From: Pristiophorus japonicus
Taxonomy: Eukaryota
NCBI RefSeq assembly: GCF_044704955.1
Contig: NC_091999.1
Coordinates: 47,864,001-47,928,000 of the forward strand
DNA length: 64,000 nucleotides
Reading direction: 5' to 3'
A program made the position numbers and the translations under genes. Every line of letters begins with the position of its first letter. The stretch's first letter is position 1. The notes beneath the pieces were generated by a model. It saw nothing but the letters and a program-made list of their open reading frames with translations. It was not told the DNA's origin and made no database searches. Positions 10,194-62,956 of this stretch are shown here, in pieces.

Positions 10194-10357
10194 GACACAC
10201 TTGGAGAGACCGCACCTTCCTCGAGACAGGATCATTATCGTCACTAAGTTCACTGCAAGAAAGAGAAAAACAGGGAATTTATATTTCAGATTGAGAGCAA
10301 CATCAGCTGTCTCAAAGAATTATGTGTGAAATGTGTCAGGATTAAATGAACCATCCA

Positions 10358-12369: not shown

Positions 12370-13008
12370 AATACAATTAATAACTAGAACTAAAGGACAA
12401 GGACAGAAAATACAGAGAAACATGCGTTACATAATTAATTGCAGATGAAGGACTCACCAGGAACACCAACAGCAGCGAGGAGCGGGTAATAAATACGTTC
12501 CACATTTAAAAGTGCCCACACGATCCTAAGCTCAGTTGGAATCTCCCAGAACATGATTTGACTTTCTGTGACCTCCAATGAGAACTGTTCGTTTTAGACA
12601 ACAACTTCAGTCAAACATTGCTATACAGGCTGAAAAAAAATCCCGATTTATAGCCTGAGTGAACTCTCCAGTGAGACAATTAAACTGCACACTGAAGGAT
12701 AGTAATCACAGTCACTGAATAAACAAGTTTTCAGAACCTTTTCTTTGCATCACTTTCAATTGCAAAATATCTTAAAAGCAACGTGGCTTTCAGATCAAAT
12801 AACTTTATCCAAAACCAAGCACTATTGGTAAAAGCAGAAATAGTTAAGTCCACAGAATCACAGCATGCATGTGAAGGGAGCAGCTTCATTTATGGAGTTT
12901 CTATTATTACTGAGATATAAAATAACTCTGTAATTTCAGATTTTCAATTCACTTCTCGGCGTAACACAAGTGAAATAAAACAAATGGAAGGATAGATTTC
13001 TAAGTGAA

Positions 13009-13553
13009 GGTCAGTAACATACATGGGGACTGACAGTACAGTGCTAAGTAAGGATACATTGGCACTGATAATACAATGGTCAGTAAAGATATATGACGAC
13101 TGATCACACAATGGTCAGTAAAGATACATGAGGACTGATAATACAATGGTCAGTAAGGATACATGGGGACTGATAATACAGTGTTCAGTAAGGGTACATG
13201 AGGACTGATAATACAATGGTCAGTAAGGGTACATGGGGACTGATAATACAGTGGTCAGTAAGGCTACCTGAGCACTGATAATACAATGGTCAGTAAGGGT
13301 ACATGGTGACTGTTAATATAATGGCGAGTAAGGATACATGGGACTGATAATACAGTGGTCACTAAGTGTACATGCGGATAGATAATACAGTCGTCAATTA
13401 GGATACATGGTGACAGATAATACAATGGTCAGTAAGGGTACATGGGGACTGATAATACAGTGGTCAGTAAGGGTACATGGGGACTGATAATACAGTGGTC
13501 AGTAAGGGTACATGGGTACTGATAATACAATGGTCAGTAAGGATTCATGGCGA
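13009..13553. repeat. 35-bp minisatellite, ~15 copies
   Basis: Unit GGTCAGTAAGGGTACATGGGGACTGATAATACAAT. Confidence 0.92.
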
Positions 13554-13599
13554 CCTATGCTATGCAGATAGTCACACGCCATGCTATCGTTTATTTTAC

Positions 13600-27250: not shown

Positions 27251-28475
27251 CGACTAAGAAAGCAATAAAGGAAGGAAAGATAGATTACAAAGGTAAACTT
27301 GCGCAAAACATGATTACGGATAGTAAAAGCTTTTACCGATATGTAAAACGGAAAAGAGTTTCTAAAGTAAATGTTGGTCCCTTAGAGGATGAGAAGGGCG
27401 ATTTAATAATGGGAAATGTGGAAATTGCTGAGAGCTTAAACAATTATTTTGCTTCGGTCTTCACAGTGGAAGACACAAAAACCATGCCAGAAATTGCTGG
27501 TTAAAGGAATGTGGGAAGGGAGGACCTTGAGATAATCACTATCACTAGTGGGGTAGTGCTGGACAGGCTAATGGGACTCAAGGTAGAAAAGTCCCCCGGT
27601 CCTGATGAAATGCATCGCAGGGATAAAGAGATAGTGGAAGTTATAGCAGATGCATTCGTTAAAATCCACCAAAACTCTCTGGACTCTGGGGAGGTACCAG
27701 CGGATTGGAAAGCAGCTAATGTAACACCTCTGTTTAAAAAAGAGGGCAGGCAAAAGGCAGGTAACTAAAGGCCGGTTAGTTTAACATCTGTAGTGGGGAA
27801 AATGCTTGAAACTATCATTAAGGAAGAAAGAGCGGGATATCTAGATTTGAATAGTGCAATCAAGCAGACACAGCATGGATTCATGAAGGGGAAATCATGT
27901 TTAACTAATTTACTGGAATTCTTTGAGGATATAAAGAGCATGGTGGATACAGGTGTACCGATAGATGTGCTGTATTTAGATTTTCAAAAGGCATTCGATT
28001 AGGTGCCACACAAAAGGTTACTGCAGAAGATAAAGGCACGTGGAGTCAGAGGAAAAGTATTAGCATGGATAGAAAATTGGCTGGCTAACAGAAAGCAGAG
28101 AGTCGCGATAAATGGGTCCTTTTTGGGTCGGAAATCGCTGGTTAGTGGTGTGCCACAGGGATCGGGGCTGGGTCTACAACTGTTTACAATATATATAGAT
28201 GACCTGGAAGAGGGGACAGAGTATAGTGTAACACAATTTGCAGATGACACAAAGATTAGTGGGAAAACGGGTTGTGCAGAGGACACAGAGAGGCTGCAAA
28301 GAAATTTAGATAGGTTAGAGAATGGGCTAAGATTTGGCAGATGGAATTCAATGTCGGAAAGTGTGAGGTCATCCACCTTGAGGGAAAAAAAACAGCAAAA
28401 GGGAATATTATTTGAATGGGGAGAAATTATAAAATGCTGCGATGCAGAGGGACTTGGGGGTCCTTGTGCATGAAA
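27251..28475 (+). mobile_element. CR1 LINE, 5' segment (host of the Tx1 array)
   Basis: Degenerate ORF2: KSPGPD, ANVTPLFKK, QHGFMKGKSCLTNL, FADDTK, ending at RDLGVLVHE. Confidence 0.93.
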
Positions 28476-31400
28476 CTCTTTTAGGAGCAAACAAAAAACA
28501 TTAAGCCGTGCCCCCCGATCTGGGGGAAACACCAACATTTACAAGGTTTATTTTTGGCACAAAAGCATATTTTTTCTCCAAGTGCCCCCTATAAAAGGGG
28601 CGGGGGACACTAAAAGCACCGGCAATTAAAACAAATTAACTTAAAAATATGAAATCAAGTTAAAATTTGGTTGCCGGGCGTGATGATGCACTCCAGTCCC
28701 TCTGGTGACCACCTCTTGCGGAAGGCAACGAGTGTACCGGTGGACACCGCATGCTCCATCTCCAGGGACACCCTTGACCGGATGTATGCGCGGAAGAGAG
28801 GCAGGCAGTCTGGCTGAACGACCCCCTCGACCGCCTGCTGCCTGGACCGGCTGAGGGCCCCCTTGGCCGTGCCCAGGAGCAGTCCTACGAGGAGGCCCTC
28901 GGACCTACCCGCTCCCCTCCGCACAGGGTGCCCGAAGATCAGGAGAGTGGGACTGAAGTGCAGCCAGAATTTCAGGAGCAGCCCCTTTAAATAACAAAAC
29001 AGGGGCTGCAACCTCGTGCACTCAATAAAAACATGGAACACGGACTCTTCCAGACCGCAGAAATTGCAGGCGGCCTGGGAGCCCGTGAACCGGCTTAAAA
29101 ATTTATTGCTCGGCACTGCTCCGTGCATCACCCTCCAGGCCAAGTCCCCGGCAAATAGTGGGAGGAACCCTGCGTAGAGTGCCCTCCATCAGGATCCCCC
29201 GCCTCCTCTGGACGGCAAGATGGTACGCAATGGCGTGTCCAGACGGCAGGCAAGGATGGCAAAGTTGAGAGTGTGTAGGAGCAGCCCGTACAGGAAACCC
29301 CTCCGCGCGGAACTGAAAGGCACGGAGGGGATTTCCCCGAGGCGGCTCAAGTTGTGAGGCGCCGGCCCCGAGGGAGGTTCCGGGGTTTGGCGCCGATGAG
29401 GAATTCCGTCCGGACGGGGGTCAGTTCGGATGGGATCTCCCCGCATGCTTGAGCCTCCTCGATGCACCTAATGGAGTCGGGGCCCAGAGCTGTTTTTAGC
29501 GACTCGATGGCATCAGCCGCGCGGCGGACGTTGGCAGAATTTAGGCGCCACGCCAGCGTGTCTGGCGCCATCCAAGCCGCTCCTCCGCCATCGAGCAGGT
29601 CCCTGACCCTGGTCACCTCACCAGCCAAAGCCCTCTCATCCGACCGCCACCTAAAACCTCGGTCGTGGAGGTACGGATTCCCGAGCAGTGGCTTCTGCAG
29701 GACGGCCGCCACTCCAGCCGGTGGAGAGCTGCGTTTGGTGGAGACTTTGTTCCAGACCCTGATGAGTTCCTTGTAAAAGACAGGCAGCTCCCGGAGGGCG
29801 GTCCTGACGCCCCCCACACTCACAAACAGGAGCTGCATGTCGTAATTGAGGTCGCGCTGCTGGCGGAAGAAATACGTCGCCAGAGCACGCCATCTAGGAG
29901 GGGGCTCGACGTAAACGTATCTCTGCAGTGTCTGAAGATGGAAAGTAGCAAGCTGGGCGCTGACGCACACCAACGACTGACCGCCCTCCCCAAGCGGGAG
30001 ACTCAAGACCGCGGCAGAGACCCAGTGCTTCCTGTTGTTCCAGAAGAAGTCCACCAGCTTCTTCTGTATCTTGGCGACAAACGCAGGTGGAGCGGTCAAA
30101 GTGACCAGCCGGTACCACAACATGGCGGCCACAAGCTGGTTTATGACTAGCGCTCGACCCCTGCAGGACAGCACTCGGAGCAGTCCTGTCCAGCGCCCTA
30201 GGCGAGCGGCGACCTTGGCCTCCAGCTCCTGCCAGTTCGCCACCCACACTTCCTCGTCCGGGCTAAGGTAGACTCCCAGATAGAGGAGATGGGTCGTGCT
30301 CCAGGCAAAAGTCCTGAGCTCCTCCGGCAGGGAGTCCACCCGCCACTGACCCACCAGGAGTCCGGAACATTTCTCCCAGTTGATTCTGGCGGAGGATGCG
30401 GCCGAGTAAATCTCCTGGCACTCACGCATTCTCCGCAGGTCAGCGGGATCCTCTACCGTGAGGAGCACGTCATCGGCATAAGCCGAGAGGACGAACTCCA
30501 CGCACGGCCCTTGCAGAGCCAGTCCCGTCAACCTCGTCCGCAAGAGGCGCAGGAAAGGCTCCACGCAAACGGCGTATAACTGGCCGGACATGGGGCATCC
30601 CTGGCGCACCCCTCTCCCAAAGCGAAGGGGCGCCGTCAAGGACCCGTTAACATTAATCAGACACTCCGCGGCGGTGTACAAAAGTCGGATCCGGGCGACG
30701 AAATGCGTCCCGAAGCCGAAAGCGCGCAGAGTTCCGAGCAGATAGTCATGATCCACCCTGTCGAACGCCTTCTCTTGGTCGAGAGATAGGAAGGCGACCG
30801 ACAGACCAGCCTCCTTGGAATAATGGATGATGTCCCGGACCAGATGGATGTTATCCTGGATTGACGGCCCGGGACCGTGTAGGACTGGTCGGGATAGATC
30901 ATGTGGTCCAGCACGGCACCAAGACAAGCAGACATCGCCCTGGCGAAGATTTTGTAGTCCGTGCTGAGGAGGGAGACCGGGCACCAGTTCTTAAGGCAGC
31001 GGAGATCACCCTTCTTAGGCAGCAGGACGATGACTGCCCTGCGCCAAAAGAGGGGCATCTCCACGGTCGCCAGACTTTCCCCCACGACCCGCGCGTAGTC
31101 GCCCCCCAGGACGTCCCAGAACGCCCTGTGGAACTCCACGGTTAGCCCGTCCAGCCCCGGGGATTTTCCCCTCGAGAGCCGGTCGAGGGCGCCAGTCAGC
31201 TCCGCCAGGCTTAGCGGAGCTTCCAGATTTTCGGCGCCCTCCGGGCTGACCTTCGGCAGGTCCTCCCACAAAACTCTACGCGCTTCCTCACTGGACGGCT
31301 CCGGAGAGAACAGGGCACCGTAATATTCACGGGCCCTGTTGTTGACGCCCTCCGGATCCGAGATAGAGCCGTCGTCGGCCAGCAGCGTCAAGAGCTGCTT

Positions 31401-34400
31401 ACGGACACTCTGCCTTTTTTCCAGCGAGTAGAAGAAGGGGGAGTCGCGGTCCAGATCCCGCAGGAACCGGATCCGTGACCTCACGAACGCGCCTCGGGAC
31501 CCGACGAGCTGCAGGTCATTTAGCGGGGCCTTCTTCGCTTCGTACACCGTCCGCAGGGCCGGGTCCCCGACGACTTGACCGAGATGGGCTTCCAGGTCGA
31601 GCACCTCTTTTTCTAGACGCCCGACCCTGGCCGCCCGCCTCTTGGTCGAATCCCTCGCGTACTCTTGATAGAAGACGCGGACGTGAGCCTTGCCCACGTC
31701 CCACCATAGCCTCAAGGAGGGGAAGCCCCCCTGCCTCCTTCTCCAGTCGGACCAGAAACGACGGAACGAGTCCTGGAACCGCACGTCCTCCAGCAGCTGG
31801 TTGTTAAAGTGCCAGTACGCGGACCCCGTCCTCGCGCGGAGCGAAGCGAGCTCCGCCCACACCAAGTGGTGGTCCGAACACGGCACCAGCCGCATGGAGG
31901 CCGCCGGGACACAGGAAACGTACCCCCGAGACACGTAAAGGCGGTCGACTGTGGACCATCCAACTCCAAGCCTCACCCAAGTAAAGGCGCTGGGGTCGGG
32001 GTGGAGATTTCGCCAGACGTCCACCAAGTCGAAGGACCCGACCAGGTCCCACAACTTCTCCATCGCCGTCATGCACTGCGGGGCACCGGAGCCGTCCCTC
32101 GCCTCGAGGGTGCAGTTAAAATCCCCCCCGAGGACAATGCAGTCGCCGACGTCGACGGAGCCAAGAAGAGCGGACACCTCTTCGAAGAAGCGCGTTTGCT
32201 GCGGGCCGGGCTGAGGGGCGTACACGTTCACGAGATGGAGCGGCACGTCCCCCAGGCGAACCGTTACGTGCAGCAAGCGGCCTGGCATGGGCTCCTCGAC
32301 CCCCAAGATCTCCGGCTGAAAATGCGGGGCCAGCAAGATGGCCACCCCACTAGAAGTGGCAGTGAGGTGGCTCATCAGGACCTCTCCTTGCCATTCCAGG
32401 AGCCACGTGGCTTCGTCTCCCGGAAAGGTGTGGGTTTCTTGCAGGAAGCACACCGCATATTTCCCCTCCCGCAGGAGCGAAAAATTGTTAAATCTACGGC
32501 GTGCCTCTCTGCTGCCGTTGATGTTGAGGCTGGCTATGGTTATCTTCATGACAAAAGCATAGTGCAACCTCGACCTAACCTATTGTGGCGGGGGGAGTGG
32601 AGTCGTTTGTTGACCTCCACTCCTTCAGCAGCCCAGCGAGGAACCTTTTGAGCCGGCGCAGCTCAAGGCCTTGCGCCTTTAGTAAGGGCCCGCCCGCGGC
32701 CATGGTTTTAGTGGCGGTGCGGACGGAAGCGATGAGCAGCCCCAGCTCGGATCATCTTTCCCGGGCCAGATGGGTTTGGTTGCGGCGACCCTGGCTCTGG
32801 ACCAAAAAGTCCCGGAGTTCCTCTACGGGAATGACGGGGGAATCAGCGGCGGTCACGAGGAGATCCACCGCCTCACTGGCGATGGACTCGAGATCTTCAC
32901 CCGCGTCCCCCACCGAGTCCCCGTCCTCCTCCGGGAGGTCGCCGTCAGCAGCCGGCCCGTCGACCGCACGAGGTACGGCAAACGGCCCGGCCGCTCCATC
33001 TGGCCCCGGCTCTGCCCCGATCCCACCCCCAGGATCGTCGGCAGAGGAGTCCCCACTGGGCTCTTGTAAAATTGGTACTGGGTCGGGAAGCGACAGCGGA
33101 AGGGGTTCCTCCTCCGCCCCAGGAACCGGGGAACACGGAGAGACCTGGTCAAAGTAATGTTCCAGGTCCACCAAGTACCCCAGCTCCAAAGTAGGTGGCG
33201 AAGGTTGTTGTTCTTCCCCCTCCCCGCCGCCACCCCCCCGGCCCAGCGTGTACAGAATCGTTAAAATTAATCCATTTTCAGTTTCTTCCGGGCCGAGCGA
33301 CTCTAGGGGGCAGATAATTAATAGCTGGGCGGGCTCAGGTTCGGCCTGTTCGGCCCCGGCTGCCTCAGTCCCGGGCACGCTCGACCCGGCGGCTACGCAT
33401 TCCACCGCTGGCCCCACGCCCCCCACGACAGGCAGATCATTCACGCCATCCCCGGGAGGCAGAGGCCGGGCAGCCTCGACTGCCTCACCCTCCCCGGGTA
33501 CAGATTCCTCGCGCCTACAGCGCAATTTGGGGGCTCTGGTGGGGGACGCGGGACACGCGGCGGGCACCGACTCCTCCGCGGAGGGATGTTGTTCCCCCTC
33601 CGCCTCATTGGAGCCGCACCTCCTTTTGTTCCTGGGAGGGCGTGGAGGCAGGGAGACCTTCATGTCTGCCGAGGCCTCCCGCTCCACCCCCGCCTTTTTC
33701 TTTTCTTGCCCGCGCCCGAGCGCCTCTGTGATACTGGTCAAGGGCTCGGGCACGGGCTCAGGGCACCCCGCGCTCGCCGGTGACGGGGTTGGCCCGAGCG
33801 CGGTAAACAGATTGTCTGGCGCACTGAGGGGTCCCGCCTCTAGATGTTTCGTCTTCTTCCGTGCCTTCTTTCCGCTCGGACGCTCTCCCTCCCCCCCGCC
33901 GGAGGCCGTGAAAACAAAGGCCTCCGACGATTCCCGCGCACCTACGGCTCCCGGCACGTGGACGCTACTCGGGGGAGGGGTGGCGGCGGCACCAGCCTTT
34001 GCCGCCTTCGGTGGTTTGGCGGCTTTGGAGGCGGGGCAGTTCTTGCGAACGTGCCCCACCTCCCTGCAGGCATGGCACCGCACGCCGTCCGACGTCCAGA
34101 AGACGCGGTAGGCAGTCCCCTCGTGCACCACATTAAAATAGCCCTCCGTCGTCTCCTCCCGCGCCAGCCGGACAAAGAGCTGATGGCGGAAGGAGAACAC
34201 ATGGCGCAGGCTGTTCTCCCTGAGGCCGAGCGGTATGGGGTTGATCCCCGGCCTTACCTCCCCCAGTTGGTGTAGGTGAGGAAGGAGGAGCTCAGCGGCA
34301 ACAAAGGGCGGGACGTTTGAAATGATGACCCTCTGCGCGGTGGCCTCGAGAGGATGCACCGGCAGGAACGTCCCGCCCACCGTGAGCCCCTTTTCAATGG

Positions 34401-35620
34401 CCAGGGACACCGCTCGCTCTGACCCCAGGAAGAACACGGCCTTCCCAGACATCTTGGAGGCTGCAACAATGGCCGAGTGGCCGACTACCCCAGCCATCGC
34501 CCGCACGCACTGCTCGATGCTCATTGTGGGGTGAGTGTAGCTCTTGACCCCGTGTTTCTTGGCTATAAGTCTGAATGGTGGCAGGGCAGCAGGAGGCACA
34601 GGAGGTGCCGTGGAAGCGGTTGCCACCTGCGCATATGTCCTCGCTGGCCCTGCCACCGGCGTGGATGGGGTCGCCATCACAGGGTCCCTTTAAGGCCTAC
34701 ACCCACCCCAAAGTCACAGGCCTTAATGGTCTTAAATGGCCTCGTTTAAGTATTTGAACAGAGGGAGCTCTGAAAGAGGCACACCTCTGCCCTAGTTGGC
34801 AATTGGGGAGGGGCCTTGCTCCCTCTGCTCAGTTGTCTTAATTGTTCTTGTCTTTTTTTCCCAATTGGGAGGAAAGGCTCTCAGAGAGAGAGGGGAGAGA
34901 CAGAGAAAGAGTGAAAGAGCCAGGCGACGTGGAAAAGAGGGAAGCTGCGAGGGCTGGTCTCCCCTCACAGCGATGGGTGGGTGCACTCCCCAGATGTCAA
35001 ACAAAACAGTCTTTGGGGTGGTCTTCGGGTGGGTGGAGAAGATGTCTTCACCTGGGACAGCTGGAGCCACACAGGTACACACTCCCAACGATGTTATTCA
35101 GGGTGATTGAGTTTCTTCAGCCAGGTAGCTCCAGCTATCCCAGGCTAGGCAATGGTGGAGGGGTGCTTCAGTGGTGTGTGGGCCTAGCTGTAGGCAAGAC
35201 CCCCACACACACTTCAACACACACACACACACACACACACACACCCCGCGATGTTCCGGCCCTCAATTGGTCTTCTTTCCTCCCCCCAACCGATAAAACA
35301 AAGTCTTTTTGGGGAATGCACCAAAACACACCCACCTCTGGTTGAAGAAGTCTTTCCCTCCTTCCACACTGGTAAGTTGTTGTTCTTTTTTTTTCCCCTC
35401 TCTCGAACTCTTCGTAGGAATAATAATGGTGTTGCAGTCTTCTGCTCTCCTCCTCTCACTCTGGATAAATGGTAATGAAGCTCCTTCCTTCCTCCTCCTA
35501 TTCCTGGTCTGTTCTCAGGGCTCAGTCAAGGCATCCCAGACAGGAGCAAAGCAGGGAGTTCCTTCTCTCTCAGCAGCACAGCTCCAAGTGAAGAGGCCAC
35601 GCCTCCAAAGCTCCACCATT
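28476..35620 (-). mobile_element. Tx1-clade non-LTR retrotransposon copy 1 (full length, ~7.1 kb)
   Basis: ~940-bp 5' UTR; ORF1 from 34677 with CHACREVGHVRKNC knuckle; ORF2 32549-28655 with APE endonuclease (IASLNING, GGDFN, SDH), RT (SLDQEKAFD, QGCPMS, YADD) and C-terminal CNFCG..ESVFHVFIEC; frameshifted. Confidence 0.93.
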
Positions 35621-35637
35621 GGTCTTTGTGCATCAAA

Positions 35638-38600
35638 CTCTTTTAGGAGTAAACAAAATAATTAAACCGTGCCCCCCGATCTGTGGGAAACACCAACATT
35701 TACAAGTCCCTTTTTTAAATTTTTTTTTTTTTTGGGGCACAGAATCAAATTTTTTTTCCAAGTGCCCCCTATAAAAGGGAAGGGGGACACTAAAAGCACC
35801 GGCAATTAAAACAAATTAACTTAAAAATATAAAATCAAGTTAAAATTTGGTTGCCGGGCGTGACGATGCACTCCAGTCCCTCTGGTGCCCACCTCTCGCG
35901 GAAGACCGCAAGCGTACCGGTGGACACCGCGTGCTCCATCTCCAAGGACACCCTGGACCGGATGTATGCGCAGAAGAGAGGCAGGAAGTATGGCTGAACG
36001 AACCCCTCGACCGCCTGCTGCCTGGACCGGCTGATGGCCCCCTTGGCCGTGCCCAGGAGCAGTCCTACGAGAAGGCCCTCGGACCTACCCGCTCCCCTCC
36101 GCACAGGGTGCCAGAAGATCAGGCGTGTGGGACTAAAGTGCAGCCAGAATTTCAGGAGCAGCCCCTTTAAATTACAGAACAGGGGCTGCAACCACGTGCA
36201 CTCAATAAAAACATGGAACACGGACTCTTCCAGACCGCAGAAATTACAGGCGGCCTGGGAGCGCGTGAACCGGCTTAAAAATTTATTGCACGGCACTGCT
36301 CCGTGCACCACCCTCCAGGCCAAGTCCCCGACAAATAGTGGGAGGACCCCTGCGTAGAGTGCCCTCCATCGAGGACCCCCGCCTCCTCCGCACGGCAAGA
36401 TGGTACGCCATGGCGTGTAAGGACAGCAGGCGAGGATGACAAAGTTGAGAGTGTGCAGGAGCAGCCCGTACAGGAAACCCCTCTGCGTGGAACTGAAAGG
36501 CATGGAGGGGATTTCCCCGAGGCGGCTCAAGTTGTGAGGCGCCGGCCCCCGAGGGAGGTTCCGGGGTTTGGCGCCGATGAGGAATTCCGTCTGGACGGGG
36601 GTCAGTTCGGACGGGATCTCCCCACGTGCTTGAGCCTCCTCGATGCACCTAAAGGAGTCGGGGCCCAGAGCTGTTTTTAGCGACTCGATGGCATCGGCCG
36701 CGTGGCGGACATTGGCAGAATTTAGGCGCCGCGCCAGCGTGTCTGGCGCCATCCAGCCCGCTCCTCCGCCATCGAGCAGGTCACTGACCCTGGTCACCTC
36801 ACCAGCCACAGCCCTCTCGTCCGACCGCCACCTAAAACCTCGGCCGTGGAGGTACGGATTCCCGAGCAGCGGCTCCTGCAGGACGGCCGCCACTCCAGCC
36901 GGCGGAGAGCTGCGCTTGGTGGAGACTTTGTTCCAGACCCTGATGAGTTCCTTGTAAAAGACAGGCAGCTCCCGGCGGGCTGTCCTGACGCCCCCCACAC
37001 TCACAAACAGGAGCTGCGTGTCGTAGTTGAGGCTGTGCTACTCGCGGAAGAAATACCTCGCCAGAGCACACCACCTAGGAGGGGGCTCGACGTAAAGGTA
37101 TCTCTTCAGGGTCTGAAGATGGAAATTCGCAAGCTGGGCGCTGACGCACACCAACGACTGACCGCCCTCCTCAAGCGGGAGACTCAAGACCGCGGCAGAG
37201 ACCCAGTGCTTCCTGTTGTTCCAGAAGAAGTCCACCAGCTTCTTCTGTATCTTGGTGGCAAACGCAGGGGAAGGGGTCAAAGTGACCAGCAGGTACCACA
37301 GCATTGCGGCCACCAGCTGGTTTATGACTAGCGCTCGACCCCTGTAGGGCAGCACTCGGAGCAGTCCTGTCCAGCGCCCTAGGCGAGCGGCGACCTTGGC
37401 CTCCAGCTCCTGCCAGTTCGCCGGCCAGGCTCCCTCGTCGGGGCGAAGGTAGTCTCCCCGGTAGAGGAGATGGGTCGTGCTCCAGGCAAAAGGCCTGAGC
37501 TCCTCCGGCAGGGAGTCCACCCGCCACTGACCCACCAGGAACCAGGAATATTTCTCCCAGTTGATTCTGGCGGAGGATGCAGCCGAGTAAATCTCTTGGC
37601 ACTCACGCATCCTCCGCAGGTCAGCGGGATCCTCTACCGCGAGGAGCACGTCATCGGCGTAAGCCGAGAGGACGACTTCCACGCCCGGCCCTTGCAGAGC
37701 CAGTCCCGTCAACCTCGTCCGCAAGAGGCGCAGGAAAGGCTCCACGCAGACGGCGTATAAATGGCCAGACATGGGGCATCCCTGGATCACCCCTCTCCTA
37801 AAGCGAAGGGGCGCCGTCAAGGACCCGTTAACCTTAATCACACACTCCACGGCGGCGTACAAAAGTCGGATCCGGGCGACGAAATGCGTCCCGAAGCCGA
37901 AAGCGCGCAGAGTTCCGAGCAGATAGTCGTGATCCACCCTGTCGAACGCCTTCTCTTGGTCGAGGGATAGGAAGGCGACCGTCAGACCAGCCTCCTGGAA
38001 ATGATGGATGAGGTCCCGGACCAGATGGATGTTAGCGTGGATTGTCCGGCCCGGGACCGTGCAGGACTGGTCGGGGTGGATCATGTGGTCCAGCACGGCA
38101 CCAAGGCGAGCAGACATCGCCCTGGCAAAGATTTTGTAGTCCGTGCTGAGGAGGGAGACCGGGCGCCAGTTTTTAAGGAGGCGGAGATCGCCCTTCTTAG
38201 GCAGCAGGACGATGACTGCCCTGCGCCAAGAGAGGGGCATCTCCCCGGTCGCCAGACTTTCCCCCAGGACCCGCGCGTAGTCGCTCCCCAGGACGTCCCA
38301 GAACGCCCTGTGGAACTCCACGGTCTGCCCGTCCAGCCCCGGGGATATTCCCCTCGAGAGCCGGTCGAGGGCACCGGTCAGCTCCGCCAGGCTTAGCGGA
38401 GCTTCCAGATTTTCGGCGCCCTCCGGGCTGACCTTCGGCAGGTCCTCCCACAAAACTCTATGCACTTCCTCGCTGGACGGATCCGGAGAGAACAGAGCCC
38501 CGTAATATTCACGGGCCATGTTGTTGACGCCCTCCGGATCCGAGATAGAGAGCCGTCGTCGGCCAGCAGCGTCAAGCGCTGCTTACCGACACCCTCTCTT

Positions 38601-41600
38601 TTTTCCAGCGAGTAGAAGAAAGGCGGAGTCACGGTCCAGATCCCGCAGGAACCGGATCCGCGACCTCACGAACGCGCCTCGGGACCCGACGAGCTGCAGA
38701 TCCTTCAGCGCGGCCGTCTTCGCTTCGTACACCATCCGCAGGGCCGGGTCCTGGAAGACTTGACCGAGACGGGCTCCAGTTCGAGCACCTCTTTTTCCAG
38801 GCGCCCGACCCTGGCCGCCCGCCTCTTGGTCGAGCCGCTCGCGTATTCTTGACAGAAGACGCGGACGTGAGCCTTGCCCACGTCCCACCATAGCCTCAAG
38901 GAGGGGAAGCCACCCTGCTTCCTTCTCCTGTCGGCCCAGAAACGTCCTCCAGCAGCTGGTTGATAAAATACCACTATGCGGACCCCGTTCTCGTGCGGAG
39001 CGAAGCGAGCTCCGCCCAGACCAGGTGGTGGTCCGAACATGGCACCGGCCGCATGGAGGCCGCCAGGACGCAGGAAACGTCTGCCCGAGACACGTAAACG
39101 CGGTCGACTGTGGACCATCCTACTCCAGGCCTCACCCAAGTAAAGGCGCTGGAGTCGGGATGGAGATTTCGCCAGACGTCCACCAAGTCGAAGGACCCGA
39201 CCAGGTCCCTCAACTTCTCCATCACCGTCATGCTCTGCGGGGCACTGGAGCGGTCCATCGCCTCGAGGGTGCAGTTAAAATCCCCCCCCCCCGAGGATAA
39301 TGCAGTCGCCGACGTCGACGGAGCCAAGAAGAGCGAACACTTCTTCGAAGAAGCGCACTTGCTGCGGGCCGGGCTGACGGGCGTACACGTTCACGAGATG
39401 GAGTGGCACGTCCCCCAGGCGAACCTTTACGTGCAGCAAGCGGCCTGGAACGAGATCCTCGACCCCCAAGATCTCCGGCTGAAAATGCGGGGCCAACAAG
39501 ATGGCCACCCCACTAGAAGTGGTAGTGATGTGCCTCATGCGGACCTCTCCTTGCCATTCCAGGAGCCACGTGGCTTCATCTCCCGGAACGGTGTAGGTTT
39601 CTTGCAGGAAGCACACCGCATATTTCCCCTCCCGCATGAGCGAAAAATTGTCAAATCTACGGCGTGCCTCTCTGCCGCCGTTGATGTTGAGGCTGGCTAT
39701 GGTTATCTTCATGACTAGAGCATAGTGCAACCTCTACCTAACCTATTGTGGGAGGGGGAGTGGAGTCGTTTGTTGACCTCCACTCCTTCAGCAGCCCAGC
39801 GAGGAACTTTTGGAGCCGGCTCATCTCAAAGCCTTGAGCCTTTGATAAGGGCCCACCCGCGGCCATGGTTTTAGTGGCGGCGTGGACGGAAGCGATGAGC
39901 AACACCGGCTCAGACCATCTTTCCAGGGCCAGTCAGGTTTGGTCGCGGCGACCCCGGCACTGGACCAAAAAGTCCCAGAGTTCTTTTGCAGGAATGAGGA
40001 GGGTCTCAGCGGCGGCCGCGAGCAGAACCACCTCCTCACAGGCGATGCACTCGAGATCTTCACCCGCGGCCCCCACCGAGTCCCCGTCCCCCTCCGGGAG
40101 GTTGCCAATAGCAGCCGGCCCGTCGACCGCACTAGATACGGCAAACGGCCCGGCCGCTCCATCTGGCCCTGGCTCTGTTCCGATCCCACCCCCAGAATCG
40201 TCAGCAGAGGTGTCCCCACTGGGCTCTTCTAAAATTGGTGCTGGGTCGGGAAGCTTCAGCGGAAGGGGTTCCTCCTCCGCCCCAGGATCCGGGGAACATG
40301 GAGAGACCTGGTTTAGGAAATTCTCCAGGTCCATCAAGTCCCTCAGCTCCAAAGTAGGGGGCGAGCTTTGTTGTTCTTCCCCCTCCCCACCGCCAACCCC
40401 GGCCCAGCGTGTGGATGTATATTACAGTTGTCTGCAGTGTCAGTTTCTGCCGAGTCGAGCAAATCCCGGGGGAAGTTGGGTATTGGCTGAGCGGGCTCTG
40501 GTTTGGCCTTTTCGGCCCCGCCCGCCTCAGTCCCCGAGACGCTCGATCCAGCGGCTACACATTCTTCCGCTGGCCCCACGCCCCCCACGACAGGCAGATC
40601 TTTCACGCCATCCCCGGGAGGCAGCGGCTGGGCAGCCTCGAATGTCTCACCCTCCCCGGGGACAGACTCCTCTCGCCTACAGCGCAGCTTGGGGGCGCTG
40701 GTGGGGGACGCGGGACACGCGGCGGGCACCGACTTCTCCACGGAGGGATGTTGTTCCCCCTCCGCCTCATTGGAGCGGCGCCTCCTTTTGTTCCTGGGAG
40801 TGAGCGGAGGCAAGGAGACCCCCATGTCTGCCGAGGCCTCCTGCTCCACTCCCCCCTTTTCCTTATCATGCCCGCGCCCGAACACCTCTGCGGTATTGAT
40901 CGAGGGCTCGGGCACGGGCTCAGGGCACCCCGCGCTCGCCGGTGACGGGGTTGGGCTGAGCGTGATAAACAGATTGTCTGGCGCACCGAAGGGACCCGCC
41001 TCGAGATGTTTCGTCTTCTTCCGCGCCTTCCTTCCGGCCGGACGCTCTCCCTCCCCCCCGCCGGAGGCCCTGAAAACAAAGGCCCCCGACGATGCCCGCG
41101 CACCGACGGCTTCCGGCACGCGAATGCAACTAGGGGGAGGGGTGGTGGCGGCGCCAGCCTTGGCCGCCTTCGGTGGTTTGGCGGCTTTGGAGGCGGGGCA
41201 GTTCTTGCGAACGTGTCCCACCTCCCTACAGGCATGGCAACGCACGCCGTCCGACGTCCAGAAGACGCGGTAGGCAGTCCCCTCATGCCCCACATTAAAA
41301 TTGCCCTCTGTTGTCTCCTCCCGCGGCAGCCGGACAAAGAGCTGGCGGCGGAAGGAGATCACATGGCGCAGGCTGTTCTCCCTGAGGCCGAGCGGTATGG
41401 GGTTGATCCCCGACCTTACCTCCCCCAGTTGGTGTAGGTGAGGGAGGAGTAGCTCAGCGGGAACAAAGGGCGGGACGTTCGATAGAATGACCCTCTGCGC
41501 GGTGGCCTCGAGAGGGTCTACCGGCAGAAACGTCCTGCCCACCGTGAGCCCCTTTTCGACGGCCAGGGACACCGCCCGCTCCGACCCCAGGAAGAACACG

Positions 41601-42753
41601 GCCTTCCCAGACATCTTGGAGGCTGCGACAATGGTCGAGGTGCCGACTACCCCAGCCATCGCACGCACGCACTGCTCGATGCTCATTGTGGGGTGAGTGT
41701 AGCTCTTGACCCCGTGTTTTTTAGTTATCAGTCTGAATGGTGGCAGGCAGCAGGAGACGCAGGAGGTGCCGTGGAAGCGCTTGCCACCTGCGCATATGGC
41801 CTAGCTGGCCCTGCCACCGGCGTGGATGCGGTCGCCTTCACGGGGTCCCTTTAACGGCTACACCCACCCCAAAGTCACAGGCCTTAATGGTCTTAAATGG
41901 CCTCGTTTAAATATTTGAAGAGAGGGAGCTCTGAAAGAGGCACACCTCTCCCCTAGTTGGCAATTGGGGAGTGGCCTTGCTCCCTCTGCTCAGTTGTCTT
42001 AATTGTTTGTTTTTTTTTAATTAGGAGGAAAGGGCTCTCAGAGAGAGAGGGGAGAGACAGAGCGAGATAGATAGAGGAAGAGGGGGGATGGGAAAGAGGG
42101 AAGCTGCGAGCGCAGGTCTCCCCTCACAGCAGTGGGTGGGTGCACTCCCAGATGTCAAACAAAAGAGTCTTTGGGGTGGTCTTCGGGTGGGTGGAGAAGA
42201 TGTCTTCACCTGGGGCAGCTGGAGCCACACAGTTACACACTCCCAACCATGTTAATTAGGGTGATTGACTTTCTTCAGCCTGGTAGCTCCAGCTATCCCA
42301 GGCTAGGAAATGGGGGAGGGGTGCTTCAGTGGAGTGTGGGCCTAGCTGTAGGCAAGACCCCCACACACACTTCCACACACACACACACACCCTCCGCGAT
42401 GTTCCGGCCCTCGATAGGTCTTCTTTCCTCCCCCCACCGATACAACAAAGTCTATTGGGGAATGCACCAAAACACACCCACATCTGGTTGAAGAAGTCTT
42501 TCCCTCCTTCCACACAGTTGTTTTTTCCCCCTTTCTCCAAATCTTTGTAGAATTAATCAAGTTGTTGCAGTCTTCTGCTCTCCTCCTATCCCTCTGGAAG
42601 AATGGTAATATAGCCCCTTCCTTCCTCCTCCTATTCCTGGGCTGGTCTCAGGGCTCACTCAAGGCCTCCCAGACAGGAGCAAAGCAGGGAGTTCCTTCTC
42701 TCTCAGCAGCACAGCTCCAAGTGAATAGGCCACGCCTCCAAAGCGCCACCATT
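35638..42753 (-). mobile_element. Tx1-clade retrotransposon copy 2 (full length, multiple frameshifts)
   Basis: Same architecture; ORF1 pieces 39821-41686, ORF2 pieces 39712-35835. Confidence 0.93.
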
Positions 42754-42769
42754 GTTCCTTGTGCATAAA

Positions 42770-45700
42770 CTCCTTTAGGAGTAAACAAAAAACATTAAAC
42801 CGTGCCCCCGATCTGGGGGAAACGCCAACATTTACAATGTCCTTTTTTTTTTGGGCACAGAATTGAATTTTTATCCAAGTGCCCCCTACAAAAGGGGAGG
42901 GGGACACGAAAAGCACCGGCAATTAAACACCTAAAGTCAAATTAAAACTTGGTTGCCGGGCGTGATGATGCACTCCAGTCCCTCCGGTGCCCACCTCTCG
43001 TGGAAGGCCGCGAGCGTACCGGTGGACACCGCGTGCTCCATCTCCAAGGACAGCTTGGACTGGATGTAAGAGCGGAAGAGAGGCAGGCAGTCTGGCTGAA
43101 CGACCCCCACGACCGCCCGCTGCCTGGACCGGCTGATGGCTCCCTTGGCCGTGCCCAGGAGCCGTCCAACGAGGAGGCCCTCGGACCAACCCGCTCCCCT
43201 CCGCACAGGGTGCCCGAAGATCAGGAGTGTGGGACTGAAGTGCAGCCAGAATTTCAGGAGCAGCCCCTTTAAATAACAAAACAGGGACTGCAAACTCGTG
43301 CACTCAATAAAAACATGGAACACGGACTCTTTTAGACCGCAGAAATTGAAGGCGGCCTGGGAGTCCGTGAACCGGCTTAATAATTTATTGCACGGGACTG
43401 CTCCGTGCACCACCCTCCAGGCCAAGTCCCCGATAAATACTGGGAGGACGCCTGCGTAGAGTGCCCTCCATCGGTGACCCGCGCCTCTTCCGGACGGCAA
43501 GATGGTACGCCATGGCGTGTCCGGACGGCAGGCGAGGTTGGCAAAGTTGAGAGTGTGCAGGAGCAGCCCGTACAGGAAACCCCTCCGCGCGGAACTGAAA
43601 GGCACGGAGGGGATTTCCCCGAGGCGGCTCCAGTTGTGAGGCGCCGGCCCCCGAGGGAGGTTCCGGGGTTTGGCGCCAATGAGGAATTCTGTCCGGACGG
43701 GGGTCAGTTCGGACGGGATCTCCCCACGTGCTTGAGCCTCCTCGATGCACCAAACGGAGTCGGGGACCAGAGCTCTTTTTAGCGACTCGATGGCATCGGC
43801 CGCATTGCGGACGTTGGCAGAATTTAGGCGCCGTGCCAGCGTGTCTGGCGCCATCCAGCCCGCTCCTCCGCCATCGAGCAGGTCCCTGACTCTGGTCACC
43901 TCACCAGCCACAGCCCTCTCATCCGACCGCCACAAAAAACCTCGGCCGTGGAGTTACGGATTCCCGAGCAGCGGCTCCTGCAGGACGGCCGCCACTCCAG
44001 CCGGTGCAGAGCTGGGATTGCTGGAGACTTTGTTCCAGACCCTGATGAGTTCCTTGTAAAAGACAGGCAGCTCCCGGAGGGCGGTCCTGACGCCCCCACA
44101 CTCACAAACAGGAGCTGCGTGTTGTTGTTGAGGCCGTGCTGCTGGCGAAATAAATACATTGCCAGAGCAGGCCACCTAGGAGGAGGCTCGACGTAAAGAT
44201 ATCTCTGCAGGGTCTGAAGATGGAAAGTCGCGAGCTGGGCGCTGACGCACAACAACGACTGACCACCCTACCCAAGCGGGAGACTCAAGACCGCGGCAGA
44301 GACCCAGTGCTTCCTGTTGTTCCAGAAGAAGTCCACCAGCTTCTTCTGTATCTTGGCGACAAACGCAGGGGGAGGGCTCAAAGTGACCAGCCGGTACCAC
44401 AACATGGCTGCCACCAGCTGGTTTATGACTAGCGCTCGACCCCTGTAGGACAGCACTCGGAGCAGTCCTGTCCAGCGGCCTAGGCGAGCGGCGACCTTGG
44501 CCTCCAGCTCCTGCCAGTTCGCCACCCACACTTCCTCGTCGGGGCTAAGGTAGACTTCCAGATAGAGGAGATGGGTCGTGCTCCAGGCAAAAAGCCTGAG
44601 CTCCTCCGGCAGGGAGTCCACCCGCCACTGACCCACCAGGAGTCCGGAACATTTCTCCCAATTGATTCTGGCGGAGGACGCGGTCGAATAAATCTCCTGG
44701 CACTCACACATCCTCCGCAGGTCAGCGGGATCCTCTACCGCGAGGAGCACGTCATCGGCGTAAGCCGAGAGGACGACTTCCACGCCCGGCCCTTGCAGAG
44801 CCAGTCCCGTCAACCTCGTCCGCAAGAGGCGCAGGAAAGGCTCCACCGCATATTTCCCCTCCCGCAGGAGCGAAAAATTGTCAAATCTACGGCGTGCCCC
44901 TCTGCCGCCGTTGATGTTGAGGCTGGCTATGGTTATCTTCATGACTAGAGCATAGTGCAACCTCTACCTAACCTATTGTGGGGGGGGAGTGGAGTCGTTT
45001 GTTGACCTCCACTCCTTCAGCAGCCCAGCGAGGAACTTTTTGTAGCCGGCGCAGCTCAAGGCATTGCGCCTTTGATAAGGGCCCGCCCGCGGCCATGCTT
45101 TTAGCTGCGGTGCGGACGGAAGCGACGAGCAACACTGGCTCAGACCATCTTTCCCGGGCCAGACGTGCTTGGTCGCGGCGACCCCGGCACTGGACCAAAA
45201 AGTCCCGGAGTTCCTTTACAGGAATGAGGAGGGTCTCAGCGGCGGCCGCGAGCAGATCCACCGCCTCACTGGCGATGGTCTCTAGATCTTCTCCTGCGTC
45301 CCCCACCGAGTCTCCGTCCCCCTCCGGGAGGTCGCCGCCAGCAGCCGGCCCATCGACCGCACGAGATACGGCAAACGGCCCGGCCGCTCCATCTGGCCCT
45401 GGCTCTGCCCAGATCCCACCCCCACGATCGTCGGCAGAGGAGTCCCCACTGAGCATTTTTAAAAGTGGTGCTGGGTCGGGAAGCGACAGCGGAAGGGGTT
45501 CCTCCTCCGCCCCAGGAGCCGGGGAACACGGAGAGACCTGGTTGAGGAAATTCTCCAGGTCCACCAAGTATCCCAGCTCCAAAGTAGGGGGTGAGGGTTG
45601 TTGTTCTTCCCCCTCCCCGCCGCCTCCCACCGGCCCAGCGTGTGGATGTATATTACAGTTGTCTGCAGTGTCAGCTTCTGCCGAGTCGAGCAAATCCCGG

Positions 45701-47956
45701 GGGAAGTTGGGTATTGGCTGGGCGGCCTCAGGTTCGGCCTTTTCGGCCTCGCCCGCCTCAGTCCCCGGGACGCTCGACCCGGCGGCTACCGATTCTTCCG
45801 CTGGCCCCACGCCCCCCACGACAGGCAGATCTTCCACATCATCCCCGGGAGGCAGCGGCTGGGCAGCCTCGACTGCCTCACCCTCCCCGGGGACAGATTC
45901 CTCACGCCTACAGCGCAGTTCGGGGGCGATGGTGGGGGACGCGGGACACGCGACGGGCACCGACTCCTCCGCGGAGGGATGTTGTTCTCCCTCCACCTCA
46001 TTGGAGCGGCGCCTCCTTTTTTTCCTGGGGGTGCGCGGAGGCAGGGAGACCCCCATGTCTGCCGAGGCCTCCCGCTCCACTCCCCCCTTTTTCTTGTCTT
46101 GCCCACGCCCGAACCCCTCGGTGATACTAGTCAAGGGCTCGGGCACGGGCTCAGGGCACCCCGCGCTCGCCGGTGACGGGGTTTGGCCGAGCGCGGTAAA
46201 CAAGTTGTTTGGCGCACCGAGGGGATGTTTCGCCTTCTTCCGCGCCTTCTTTCCGGCCGTGAAAACAAAGGCCCCCGATGATGCCCGCGCACCTATGGCT
46301 CCCGGCAAGTGGACGCTACTAGGGGGAGGGGTGGCGGCGGCGCCAGCCTTGGACGCCCTCGGTGGTTTGGCAGCCTTGTTGGCGGGGCAGTTCTTGCGAA
46401 CATGCCCCACCTCCCTACAGGCATGGCACCGCACGCCGTTCGACGTCCAGAAGACGCGGTAGGCAGTCCCCTCGTGCACCACATTAAAATAGCCCTCCGT
46501 CTTCTCCTCCCGCGCCAGCCGGACAAAGAGCTGGCGGCGGAAGGAGAACACATGGCAGAGGCTGGTCTCCCTGAGGCCGAGCGGTATGAGGTTGATCCCC
46601 GACCTTACCTCCCCCAGTTGGTGTAGGTGAGGGAGGAGGAGCTCAGCGGGAACAAAGGGCGGGACGTTTGAAATGATGACCCTCTGCGTGGTGACCTCGA
46701 GAGGGTCCACTGGCAGGAAAGTCCCGCCCACCGTGAGCCCCTTTTCAAGGGCCAGGGACACCGGTCGCTCCGACCCCAGGAAGAACACGGCCTTCCCAGA
46801 CATCTTGGAGGCTGCGACAATGGCCCAGGGGCCGACTACCCCAGCCATCGCCCGCGCGCACTCCTCAATGCTCATTGTGGGGTGAGTGTAGCCCTTGACC
46901 CCGTGTTTTTTAGTTATCAGTCTTAATGGTGGCAGGGCAACAGGAGGCGCAGGAGGCGCCGTGGATGTGGACGCCGCCTGCGCATAATTCCTAGCTGGCC
47001 CTGCCACCAGCGTGGATGGGGTCGCCATCACGGGGTCCCTTTAAGGGCGACATCCACCCCAAAGTCACAGGCCTTAATGGTCTTAACTGGCCTCGTTTAA
47101 GTTTTTAACAGCGGGAGCTCTGAAAGAGGCACTCCTCTCCCCTAGTTTGCAATTGGGGAGGGGCCTTGCTCCCTCTGCTCAGTTGTCTTAATTGTTCTTG
47201 TCTTTTTTTCCCAATTGGGAGGAAAGGCTCTCAGAGAGAGAGGGGGGAGACAGAGAGAGAGACAGAGTGATGGGGTGTGGGAAAGAGGGAGGCTGCAAGG
47301 GCAGGTCTCCCTTCACAGTAATGGGTGGGTGCACTCCACAGATGGCAAACAAAACAGTCTTTGGGGTGATCTTCGGCTGGGGGGAGAAGATGTCTTCACC
47401 TGGGGCAGCTGGAGCCACACAGGTATACACTCCCAACGATGTTAATTAGGGTGATTCAGTTTCTTCAGCCTGGTAGCTCCAGCTATCCCAGGCTAGGCAA
47501 TTGGGTGAGGGGTGTTCAGTGGTGTGTGGGCCTAGCTGTAGGCAAGACCCCCACACACACTTCCACACACACACCCCCCCCCCCCCCCGCGGTGTTCTGG
47601 CCCTCGATTGGTCTTCTTTCCTCCCCCCACCGATACAACAAAGTATTTTTGGTGAATGCACCAAAACACACCCACCTTTGGCTGAAGAAGTCTTTCCCTC
47701 CTTCCACACTGGTAAGTTGTTGTTCTTTTTTCCACCTCTTTCCAACTCTTTGTTGAAATAATGAAGGTGTTGCAGTCTTCTGCTCTCCTCCTCTCCCTCG
47801 AGATGAATGGTAATGAAGCCCCTTCCTACCTCCTGTTCCTGGGCTGGTCTCAGGGCTCACTCCAGGCCTTCCAGACAGAAGCTAAAGCAGGGAGTTCCTT
47901 CTCTCACAGCAGCCAGGCTCCAAGTGCATAGGCCACGCCTCCAAAGCTCCATCATT
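42770..47956 (-). mobile_element. Tx1-clade retrotransposon copy 3 (intact ORF1, ~1.9 kb internal ORF2 deletion)
   Basis: ORF1 open; ORF2 reads GKYAV|EPFLRLL, joining the EN start to mid-RT at 44844-44846. Confidence 0.93.
44968..47028 (-). CDS. Tx1 ORF1 protein (nucleic-acid binding, CCHC knuckle), open frame
   Basis: Uninterrupted ~686 aa; homologous to the frameshifted ORF1s of copies 1 and 2. Confidence 0.8.
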   Translation of the reverse strand: MATPSTLVAGPARNYAQAASTSTAPPAPPVALPPLRLITKKHGVKGYTHPTMSIEECARAMAGVVGPWAIVAASKMSGKAVFFLGSERPVSLALEKGLTVGGTFLPVDPLEVTTQRVIISNVPPFVPAELLLPHLHQLGEVRSGINLIPLGLRETSLCHVFSFRRQLFVRLAREEKTEGYFNVVHEGTAYRVFWTSNGVRCHACREVGHVRKNCPANKAAKPPRASKAGAAATPPPSSVHLPGAIGARASSGAFVFTAGKKARKKAKHPLGAPNNLFTALGQTPSPASAGCPEPVPEPLTSITEGFGRGQDKKKGGVEREASADMGVSLPPRTPRKKRRRRSNEVEGEQHPSAEESVPVACPASPTIAPELRCRREESVPGEGEAVEAAQPLPPGDDVEDLPVVGGVGPAEESVAAGSSVPGTEAGEAEKAEPEAAQPIPNFPRDLLDSAEADTADNCNIHPHAGPVGGGGEGEEQQPSPPTLELGYLVDLENFLNQVSPCSPAPGAEEEPLPLSLPDPAPLLKMLSGDSSADDRGGGIWAEPGPDGAAGPFAVSRAVDGPAAGGDLPEGDGDSVGDAGEDLETIASEAVDLLAAAAETLLIPVKELRDFLVQCRGRRDQARLARERWSEPVLLVASVRTAAKSMAAGGPLSKAQCLELRRLQKVPRWAAEGVEVNKRLHSPPTIG

Positions 47957-47973
47957 GGTCCTTGTGCATGAAA

Positions 47974-48167
47974 CTCTTTTTGGGAGTAAACAAAAAACAT
48001 TAAACCGTACCCCCCCCCCCCCGGGTCTGGGGGAAATACCAAACATTTACAGGCCCTTTTATTTTTGGTGGTATTTTTTGGGGGTTTTTTTTGGGCACAA
48101 AAACATATTTTTTCTCCAAGTGCCCCCTATAAAAGGGGAGGGGGACACTAAAAGCACCGGCAATTAA
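47974..48167 (-). mobile_element. Tx1 copy 4: 3' UTR stub only
   Basis: Same 3' UTR as copies 1-3 (…GTGCCCCCTATAAAAGGGG.GGGGGACAC…GCACCGGCAATTAA), joined directly to CR1. Confidence 0.88.
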
Positions 48168-48861
48168 TGTTAGTTTGCAGGTGCAGCAGGTAATCAGGAA
48201 GGCGAATGGAATGTTGACATTCATTGCCAGAGAGATGGAGTACAAAAGCAGGGAGGTCCTTCTGCAACTGTATAGGGTATTGGTGAGGCCGCACCTGGAG
48301 TACTGTGTGCTGTTTTGGTCACCTTACTTAAGGAAGGATATACTAGCTTTGGAGGGGGTACAGAGACGATTCACGAGGCTGATTCAGGAGATGATAGGGT
48401 TACCTTATGATGATAGATTGAGTAGACTGGGTCTTTACTCGTTGGAGTTCAGAAGGATGAGGGTTGATCGATAGAAACATTTAAAACAATGAAAGGCATA
48501 GACAAGATAGAGCAGAGAGGTTGTTTCCACTGCTCGGGGAGACTATAACTAGAGGGCACAGCCTCAAAATACAGGGGAGCCAATTTAAAACTCAGTTGAG
48601 AAGGAATTTCTTCTCCCACAGAGTTGTGAATCGGTGGAATTATCTGCAAAGGGGAGGAATTGAGGATAGCTCATTGAATGTATTCAATTCACAGAAAGAT
48701 AGATTTTTAACCAATAAGGGAATTAAGAGTTATGGGGAGCGGGCGGGTAAGTGGAGCTGAATCCACGGCCAGATCAGCCATGATCTTGTTGAATGGCGGA
48801 GCAGGCTCCAGATGCAAGATGGCCTACTCCTGTTCCTAATTCTTATGTTCTTATGTTCTTA
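48168..48861 (+). mobile_element. CR1 LINE, 3' segment (continuation of 27251-28475)
   Basis: Resumes VSLQVQQVIRKANGML, the sequence that follows DLGVLVHE in CR1 RT; (TTCTTATG)3 tail. Confidence 0.93.
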
Positions 48862-49222
48862 TGAAGGTGTCCATCAGAACAAGGAAAATGCTTTACCACT
48901 GGATTTATTGACGGTTCTGTTGGTGATTATCAAGGAGATCGCTTCATGTCCCACCACACAGGTGTGAGAGGCGTCGCTGGCCCATACCTCGGCTGCAATG
49001 GATAGCAGGCTGTACATGAAGAAGGAGCTGCTACCGTTCTCCGCCATCACCTCGGTGTTCTTGCAGTTGCGGGAATCCACCGGCTTGTCATTGACGGTCC
49101 ATTTGACGAAGATCTCTCGGGGGGAGAACCTCTCACTAAGCAGGTGAGGCTGACCAACCTCTGAGCAGAGACTTCTGCTGAGGGCAGGAGGACAGACACG
49201 GCTGGTTCCCGCGGATCTTTCG
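48862..49222 (-). pseudogene. IGHM: IgM CH4 exon (48897-49222) plus proximal secretory tail
   Basis: [53 protein letters not shown]; AG acceptor; frameshift; tail partly deleted. Confidence 0.93.
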
Positions 49223-62615: not shown

Positions 62616-62956
62616 NNNNNNNNNNNNNNNNNNNNNNNNNNNNNNNNNNNNNNNNNNNNNNNNNNNNNNNNNNNNNNNNNNNNNNNNNNNNNNNNNNNNN
62701 NNNNNNNNNNNNNNNNNNNNNNNNNNNNNNNNNNNNNNNNNNNNNNNNNNNNNNNNNNNNNNNNNNNNNNNNNNNNNNNNNNNNNNNNNNNNNNNNNNNN
62801 NNNNNNNNNNNNNNNNNNNNNNNNNNNNNNNNNNNNNNNNNNNNNNNNNNNNNNNNNNNNNNNNNNNNNNNNNNNNNNNNNNNNNNNNNNNNNNNNNNNN
62901 NNNNNNNNNNNNNNNNNNNNNNNNNNNNNNNNNNNNNNNNNNNNNNNNNNNNNNNN
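62616..62956. other. Assembly gap
   Basis: 341 consecutive N. Confidence 1.

Follow-up and report, generated by a model that had tools for sequence, protein, structure and literature searches.

A probable sequence-specific, Tx1-type LINE stacked head to tail inside a CR1 retrotransposon of Pristiophorus japonicus

Anatomy of the array

In a stretch of 64,000 nucleotides of Pristiophorus japonicus (NCBI RefSeq assembly GCF_044704955.1, contig NC_091999.1, positions 47,864,001 to 47,928,000 of the forward strand; the whole of it is referred to as the window), a CR1 long interspersed element (LINE) is interrupted in its reverse transcriptase (RT)-coding region by four copies, A to D, of a second LINE. 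The second element is probably a sequence-specific L1-group LINE with Tx1-type features, which was inserted into CR1 and stacked there by repeated insertion. Along the plus strand, the left part of CR1 with motif 1 is followed by copy A, motif 2, copy B, motif 3, copy C, motif 4, copy D and the right part of CR1, and all four copies lie on the minus strand, antisense to CR1 (Table 1). When up to three mismatches were allowed, exactly four plus-strand matches to the 17-nt CR1 motif GGTCCTTGTGCATGAAA were found in the window, starting at 28459, 35621, 42754 and 47957, against 0.27 expected by chance, and none of 100 shuffles reached four. Direct-repeat analysis revealed three long units spaced by about 7.1 to 7.2 kb, the third being shorter, and no element fragments were found beyond the array in the 64-kb window.

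The junction structure is the same at all four motifs. Directly after each of them stands the reverse-complemented 3' end of the element (CTCTTTTAGGAG...), with the four 3' ends placed at one nucleotide, and directly before motifs 2 to 4 stands the reverse-complemented 5' end (...CCACCATT). Read in its own direction, the element starts with AATGGTGG..., the first nucleotide of which is identical in A, B and C, and terminates in ...CTCCTAAAAGAG without a poly(A) tail. Neighbouring copies are separated by a single CR1-derived copy of the target, of 17, 16 and 17 nt. A preliminary description of this DNA had placed four antisense copies in the CR1 codons, with the same motif at the 3' end of every copy. 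The motif search and the reading of the junctions bore out the four insertions at one site and the motif beside each 3' end, but the fourth copy turned out to be a 194-bp stub of the 3' untranslated region (UTR) only, and the motif, CR1-derived at all four junctions, is reduced to 16 nt by one deletion at the third.

Table 1. Coordinates of the host CR1, the motif copies and the inserted copies in the window (ORF, open reading frame)
Feature	Position	Strand	Basis	Remarks
Host CR1, left part	27295..28475	+		RT-coding; ends in RDLGVLVHE codons
Motif copy 1	28459..28475	+	motif search, junction reading	native CR1 target GGTCCTTGTGCATGAAA
Copy A	28476..35620	-	frame tracing, alignment	full length, 7145 bp
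Copy A 3'UTR	28476-28657	-		
Copy A ORF2	28658-32567	-		
Copy A ORF1	32644-34680	-		
Copy A 5'UTR	34681-35620	-		
Motif copy 2	35621..35637	+		GGTCTTTGTGCATCAAA; 2 substitutions; between 5' end of A and 3' end of B
Copy B	35638..42753	-	frame tracing, alignment	full length, 7116 bp
Motif copy 3	42754..42769	+		GTTCCTTGTGCAT-AAA; 16 nt; 1 substitution and 1 deletion
Copy C	42770..47956	-	alignment	5187 bp; both termini complete
Copy C internal deletion	44846/44847			1897 bp; most of APE and part of RT lost
Copy C ORF1	44968-47031	-		open, 687 aa
Motif copy 4	47957..47973	+		GGTCCTTGTGCATGAAA; identical to native copy
Copy D	47974..48167	-		5'-truncated, 194 bp, 3'UTR only; 5' junction adjoins CR1
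Host CR1, right part	48168..48863	+		begins VSLQVQQVIRKANGML...

Structure and affiliation of the inserted element

Frame tracing with homologues placed ORF1, of about 680 aa, and ORF2, of about 1300 aa, between a 5'UTR and a 3'UTR with lengths of about 0.93 and 0.18 kb, respectively. ORF2 was matched by the Pfam families Exo_endo_phos (7.5e-11), RVT_1 (down to 6.4e-35) and zf-RVT. In ORF1, the Pfam match to zf-CCHC has E = 0.003, under the gathering score, and no RRM was detected; its zinc knuckle CHACREVGHVRKNC (CX2CX4HX4C) is intact and does not vary among A, B and C. Among proteins of solved structure, the best relative is human L1 ORF2p (PDB 8uw3 and 8sxt; E = 7.6e-42), colinear over residues 8-570 through the APE endonuclease, linker and RT. 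Among endonuclease structures, the chimera of the L1 endonuclease (L1-EN) with the Tx1L hairpin (2v0r) was the best, about 6 bits over native L1-EN. The closest ORF2 relatives of named source were found in horn shark (68% identity), sturgeon (54%) and turtles (about 50%) under uninformative names, and none of named source exceeded 68% identity in the ORF2 protein search. The ORF1 protein search gave no copy from the same species, matches in the protein atlas carried generic names only, and metagenomes, scanned once for the exact 3'-junction pattern and once for a C-terminal piece of ORF2, gave no match.

Taken together, these features fit an L1-group LINE of the Tx1 type, as the preliminary description had also assigned it. 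The Tx1-type label is based on the L1-group ORF2, the CCHC-type ORF1, the missing poly(A) and the target specificity, in combination with the published distribution of Tx1 and L1 in cartilaginous fishes, in which Tx1 is present and full-length L1 absent in whale shark and Callorhinchus (PMC8455134). Furthermore, RRM/zf-CCHC variants of ORF1 (type-I-like) of non-mammalian animals have been described as consistent with the Tx1 clade (PMC5203782).

The 5'UTR of copy A contains a (CA)20 microsatellite at 35204-35244. In ORF1 of the same copy, a patch of about 90 bp (33244-33332) holds about 30 private changes, many of them towards A/T. An inversion of the B sequence was considered as its origin and was rejected when the sequences were compared, and no other source was found in the window. 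Public contigs of the family also carry indels near this patch (33233-33275), and it may represent a hypervariable segment of ORF1.

Host CR1 and its target site

In the left flank of the array, weak RT-level similarity is present from 27295, and positions 27669-28471 are similar at the DNA level to a second CR1 copy. In the CR1 frame this flank reads RDLGVLVHE, and the motif is in frame and continuous with CR1. The 3' tail of the host is made of the octamer (TTCTTATG)x3 at 48840-48863, while the second CR1 copy ends in (TTTCTATG)x3. An octamer tail of the (ATTCTRTG)n type is taken here to be the hallmark of CR1, and on these sequence grounds the host is identified as a CR1.

The target site lies about 0.7 kb from the CR1 3' tail. 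Its empty state, ...CATGAAAC|ACAAAAAGTTAGTATGCAGG, was found in a second organism, on a contig of run X5 with uninterrupted CR1 through 28476. To the right of the array, CR1 resumes at 48168 with TGTTAGTTTGCAGG and is about 8 nt (CACAAAAA) short in comparison with this empty site, so that the 5' junction of D is read as a small target deletion. The window also contains two CR1 copies that belong to another subfamily and share about 66-70% identity with the host, one at 6 to about 1300 and the other at 8687-10195. Both read GGTGTCATGGTACATCAGT (MVHQS) at the homologous site and carry no insertion, which fits a subfamily-specific targeting of CR1 in a sample of two unoccupied copies.

The same site at other loci

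Public Logan contigs from three runs of the same organism and one run (X5) of the second organism were compared with 28300-34299. In each run of the same organism, 62,000 to 162,000 contig pieces were matched, numbers that point to a very abundant family, contig depth itself not being convertible into copy number. Among the joints listed for the same organism, three lead from inside the element back to the motif, namely 28810->28460 with filler AGGTT, 29592->28462 with filler A, and 30893->28459 with filler GT. They correspond to copies truncated at 335, 1117 and 2418 bp from the 3' end, in which the truncation point is joined to the motif and the motif in turn to the 3' end of another copy. 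Truncation at varying 5' points is a hallmark of independent target-primed insertion, and these copies appear to represent separate retrotransposition events at the same site in other loci, a signal that is real but thin. In addition, a truncated copy cannot bring the motif on the 5' end of its RNA.

Among the best-supported loose ends listed, none is located at the element/CR1 boundary 28475/28476. In the second organism, contigs with 93-98% similarity to copy A, over lengths of up to 1.2 kb, were found together with the empty CR1 site, indicating that the family and its target are common to at least two species.

Repeated insertion and local duplication

Copies A, B and C are equidistant and star-like, with pairwise identities of 92.1, 91.5 and 91.6% and no pair closer than another, and they carry 209, 204 and 215 private changes, respectively. 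Every stop and every frameshift among them is private to one copy, and none is shared. Copy A is interrupted by stops near 32754 and 29191 and changes frame near 32644, 30660 and 29350. In copy B, stops are located near 39935, 39277, 38585 and 37040, and the frame changes near 41754, 40346 and 38772, while the 1897-bp deletion (44846/44847) and stops near 44270 and 43956 belong to copy C. The preliminary description had noted that the copies differ in indels and frameshifts and had regarded shared lesions, with the copies being each other's closest relatives, as the mark of a local tandem duplication of one insertion; the difference was confirmed, and the shared stop or frameshift was absent from three equally distant copies.

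Selection on the private changes was tested by conditioning on mutation type and CpG context, with wrong-frame controls; plain Nei-Gojobori dN/dS values of 0.53-0.73 were set aside, being uncalibrated for transition and CpG bias. In lineage A, 76 non-synonymous changes were found against 92.7 expected (z = -3.27), whereas z was -0.01 in lineage B and -1.73 in lineage C, and -2.81 when combined. The wrong-frame controls gave -0.03 and +1.94. Part of the branch of A therefore evolved within a functional element. A dead duplicate in place could not show this signature of purifying selection. Copy D is an independently truncated copy and a separate event.

The alternative that survives best, although unlikely, is that one or two site-specific insertions were followed by local DNA amplification of a unit of element plus 17 bp, in which unequal crossing-over or replication slippage produced two or all of A, B and C. 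Such amplification would be consistent with the regular unit length and the identical structure of each junction, but it has to be reconciled with copies that share no stop or frameshift, with a D that was truncated differently, and with truncated copies followed by the motif and a next copy at other loci. Likewise, the equal star-like distances reveal no later homogenisation despite 7 kb of tandem homology, and the purifying selection in the lineage of A is unattainable for a dead duplicate in situ.

Several observations weigh against repeated insertion, and those from the copies themselves favour amplification. Letters that are rare in the family are shared by A, B and C at 28934 and 28995 and by A and B at 28659, 28703 and 28836, which fits a common minor subfamily as well as local kinship. 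Beside the deletion of C, 138 columns are identical between B (37608-37745) and C (44709-44846), where about 10 differences are expected. The tract may stem from gene conversion or repair between array neighbours, and the identity indicates that DNA-level exchange within the array has occurred. Furthermore, the private changes of B behave as fully neutral, which would in principle allow one of B and C to have arisen from the other by DNA duplication. As to scope, the comparison for kinship consisted of the array copies A, B and C, and in the contig comparison the rows listed are 40 out of 528 for variants and 12 out of about 277 for joint fillers. Finally, the array as a whole does not show a duplication on both sides, its right end being without a motif. 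On balance, repeated insertion appears better supported than local duplication, although B may not be independent of C, and at least two, probably four, separate events would have built D-C-B-A.

Proposed mechanism

A model of repeated target-primed insertion is proposed, in which we infer where the strands are nicked, that the endonuclease recognises the motif, and in what order the events took place. In one CR1 subfamily, the APE endonuclease would nick the sense strand at ...GTGCATGAAA^C, within the RDLGVLVHE codons. The priming nick would fall after A28475 (CATGAAA) or one base later, an ambiguity that arises because the next base, C, is common to target and element. The freed 3'-OH would then prime reverse transcription of an element RNA without poly(A), and the element would therefore come to lie antisense to CR1. 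The opposite strand would be cut 17 bp to the left, so that a full insertion acquires one copy of GGTCCTTGTGCATGAAA on either side, as a target-site duplication (TSD). Each motif copy could again be targeted, and this reuse would result in a head-to-tail stack with exactly one motif between neighbours. The event that produced D would have been 5'-truncated, with a small target deletion in place of the duplication. Template switching between RNAs in a single event was also considered and was rejected, as a target-derived motif stands between the copies.

The site specificity claimed by the preliminary description is upheld by four copies at one nucleotide and by truncated copies joined to the same motif elsewhere. 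Its proposal that the duplication regenerates the target and thereby builds arrays found support in the spacers and the private lesions, but not at the right end of the array, where the motif is lacking.

In a second alternative, the 17 nt would be carried by the element RNA, through 3' read-through or a target-mimicking terminus, and would not be a TSD; the element would be inserted where the motif begins on the left, and every copy would bring a motif of its own. Priming by read-through is known for the site-specific LINEs R1 and R2, and the exact 3' junction of all four copies without a poly(A) tail, as well as a number of motifs that equals the number of copies with none at the right end of the array, could be explained in this way. 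However, on its left side the motif continues CR1 in frame and without a break, a contig of uninterrupted CR1 spans it, and a target deletion of 25 bp at the right end would be needed, compared with 8 bp under the TSD model. Moreover, true 16-bp TSDs are made by the Tx1-mobilised SINEU-3 (PMC4494074), and the RNA-borne motif is considered quite improbable. Insertion without sequence specificity, at a local hotspot or by chance, can draw only on the general nesting of LINEs in repeat-rich DNA and has next to no probability, being contradicted by the four 3' ends at one nucleotide with 0.27 motif matches expected, by the same joint at other loci and by the absence of copies elsewhere in the 64 kb.

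Relation to known systems

Repeated site-specific insertion of this kind has precedents, since Tx1 families are known to target DNA transposons and LTR retrotransposons, and tandem copies of SINEU-3 sandwich a 16-bp TSD in a Mariner transposon, which was explained as sequential insertion (PMC4494074). Like Tx1-Mar/SINEU-3 of crocodilians (Kojima 2015, PMC4494074), the present element occupies a fixed place inside another transposon family, with a TSD of about 16 bp and tandem copies that sandwich one TSD. The target there is a Mariner DNA transposon, whereas here it is the RT-coding region of a CR1 LINE, and the SINEU-3 arrays consist of short interspersed elements (SINEs), whereas here full-length autonomous copies of 7 kb are stacked. 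The mechanism is therefore one with published Tx1 precedent (PMC4494074), and only the target class is new.

A similar comparison can be made with Tx1L of Xenopus laevis (Christensen et al. 2000), which, as cited in PMC4494074, is likewise an APE-encoding LINE of the L1 group, the endonuclease of which sets the specificity for a site inside another transposon. Its target is Tx1D, a DNA transposon of the piggyBac type, and the present element may, by its features, belong to the same clade. With the Tx1L hairpin grafted into L1-EN (PDB 2v0r), the match to the present element is slightly better than with native L1-EN. According to PMC4494074, Keno, Kibi and Koshi (Kojima and Fujiwara 2004) are target-specific vertebrate LINEs of the Tx1 clade that use multicopy safe harbours, their targets being U2 snRNA genes and microsatellites, in contrast to the transposon coding sequence here. 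Human L1, with its loose TTTT/A sites and poly(A) end, is unlike the present element; its ORF1 contains a coiled coil and RRM without a zinc knuckle, whereas a knuckle is present in ORF1 here. No report of CR1 or any other LINE as a Tx1 target was found in the open literature, with Repbase outside the scope, in agreement with the preliminary description, which had known of none that targets a CR1 RT motif.

Implications

To the published targets of sequence-specific Tx1-type LINEs (snRNA, rRNA and tRNA genes, microsatellites, satellites, DNA transposons and LTR elements), the present array would add the coding region of another LINE. With the target only 0.7 kb from the 3' end of CR1, most 5'-truncated CR1 copies keep the site, and CR1 would offer a large safe harbour since most of its truncated copies retain the target. 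The element would also provide a natural APE endonuclease with a long defined site that could be studied for targeted integration. In addition, a class of 7-kb "tandem repeats" in the genome would be explained, which annotation could mistake for segmental duplications. The window itself offers an array of four members, in which the terminal one is truncated and a target deletion is present, together with an untargeted CR1 subfamily for comparison and an argument for independent origin that draws on selection.

A broader reading, for and against which the chances seem evenly balanced, is that a very abundant LINE family resides almost exclusively in one CR1 subfamily and recognises at most about 17 bp of conserved RT-coding sequence that is hard for CR1 to change. 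If so, the endonuclease would be a natural, long-site, strand-specific nickase, and the two elements would form a parasite-on-parasite pair with escape and pursuit at the level of the subfamily. The view of the preliminary description that the element is a hyperparasite disabling its hosts, and that its endonuclease has a new specificity, may hold in the same conditional sense.

Other features of the window

A run of 341 N at 62616-62956 represents an assembly gap or a masked stretch. Another region, 12038-15684, is occupied by a series of repeats, in which a 111-bp unit is present three times (12038-12369) and a 35-bp minisatellite 15.7 times (13009-13554), and which ends in about 2 kb of purine-rich, (GAGGA)n-like low-complexity sequence with a GC skew of 0.76 (13624-15684).

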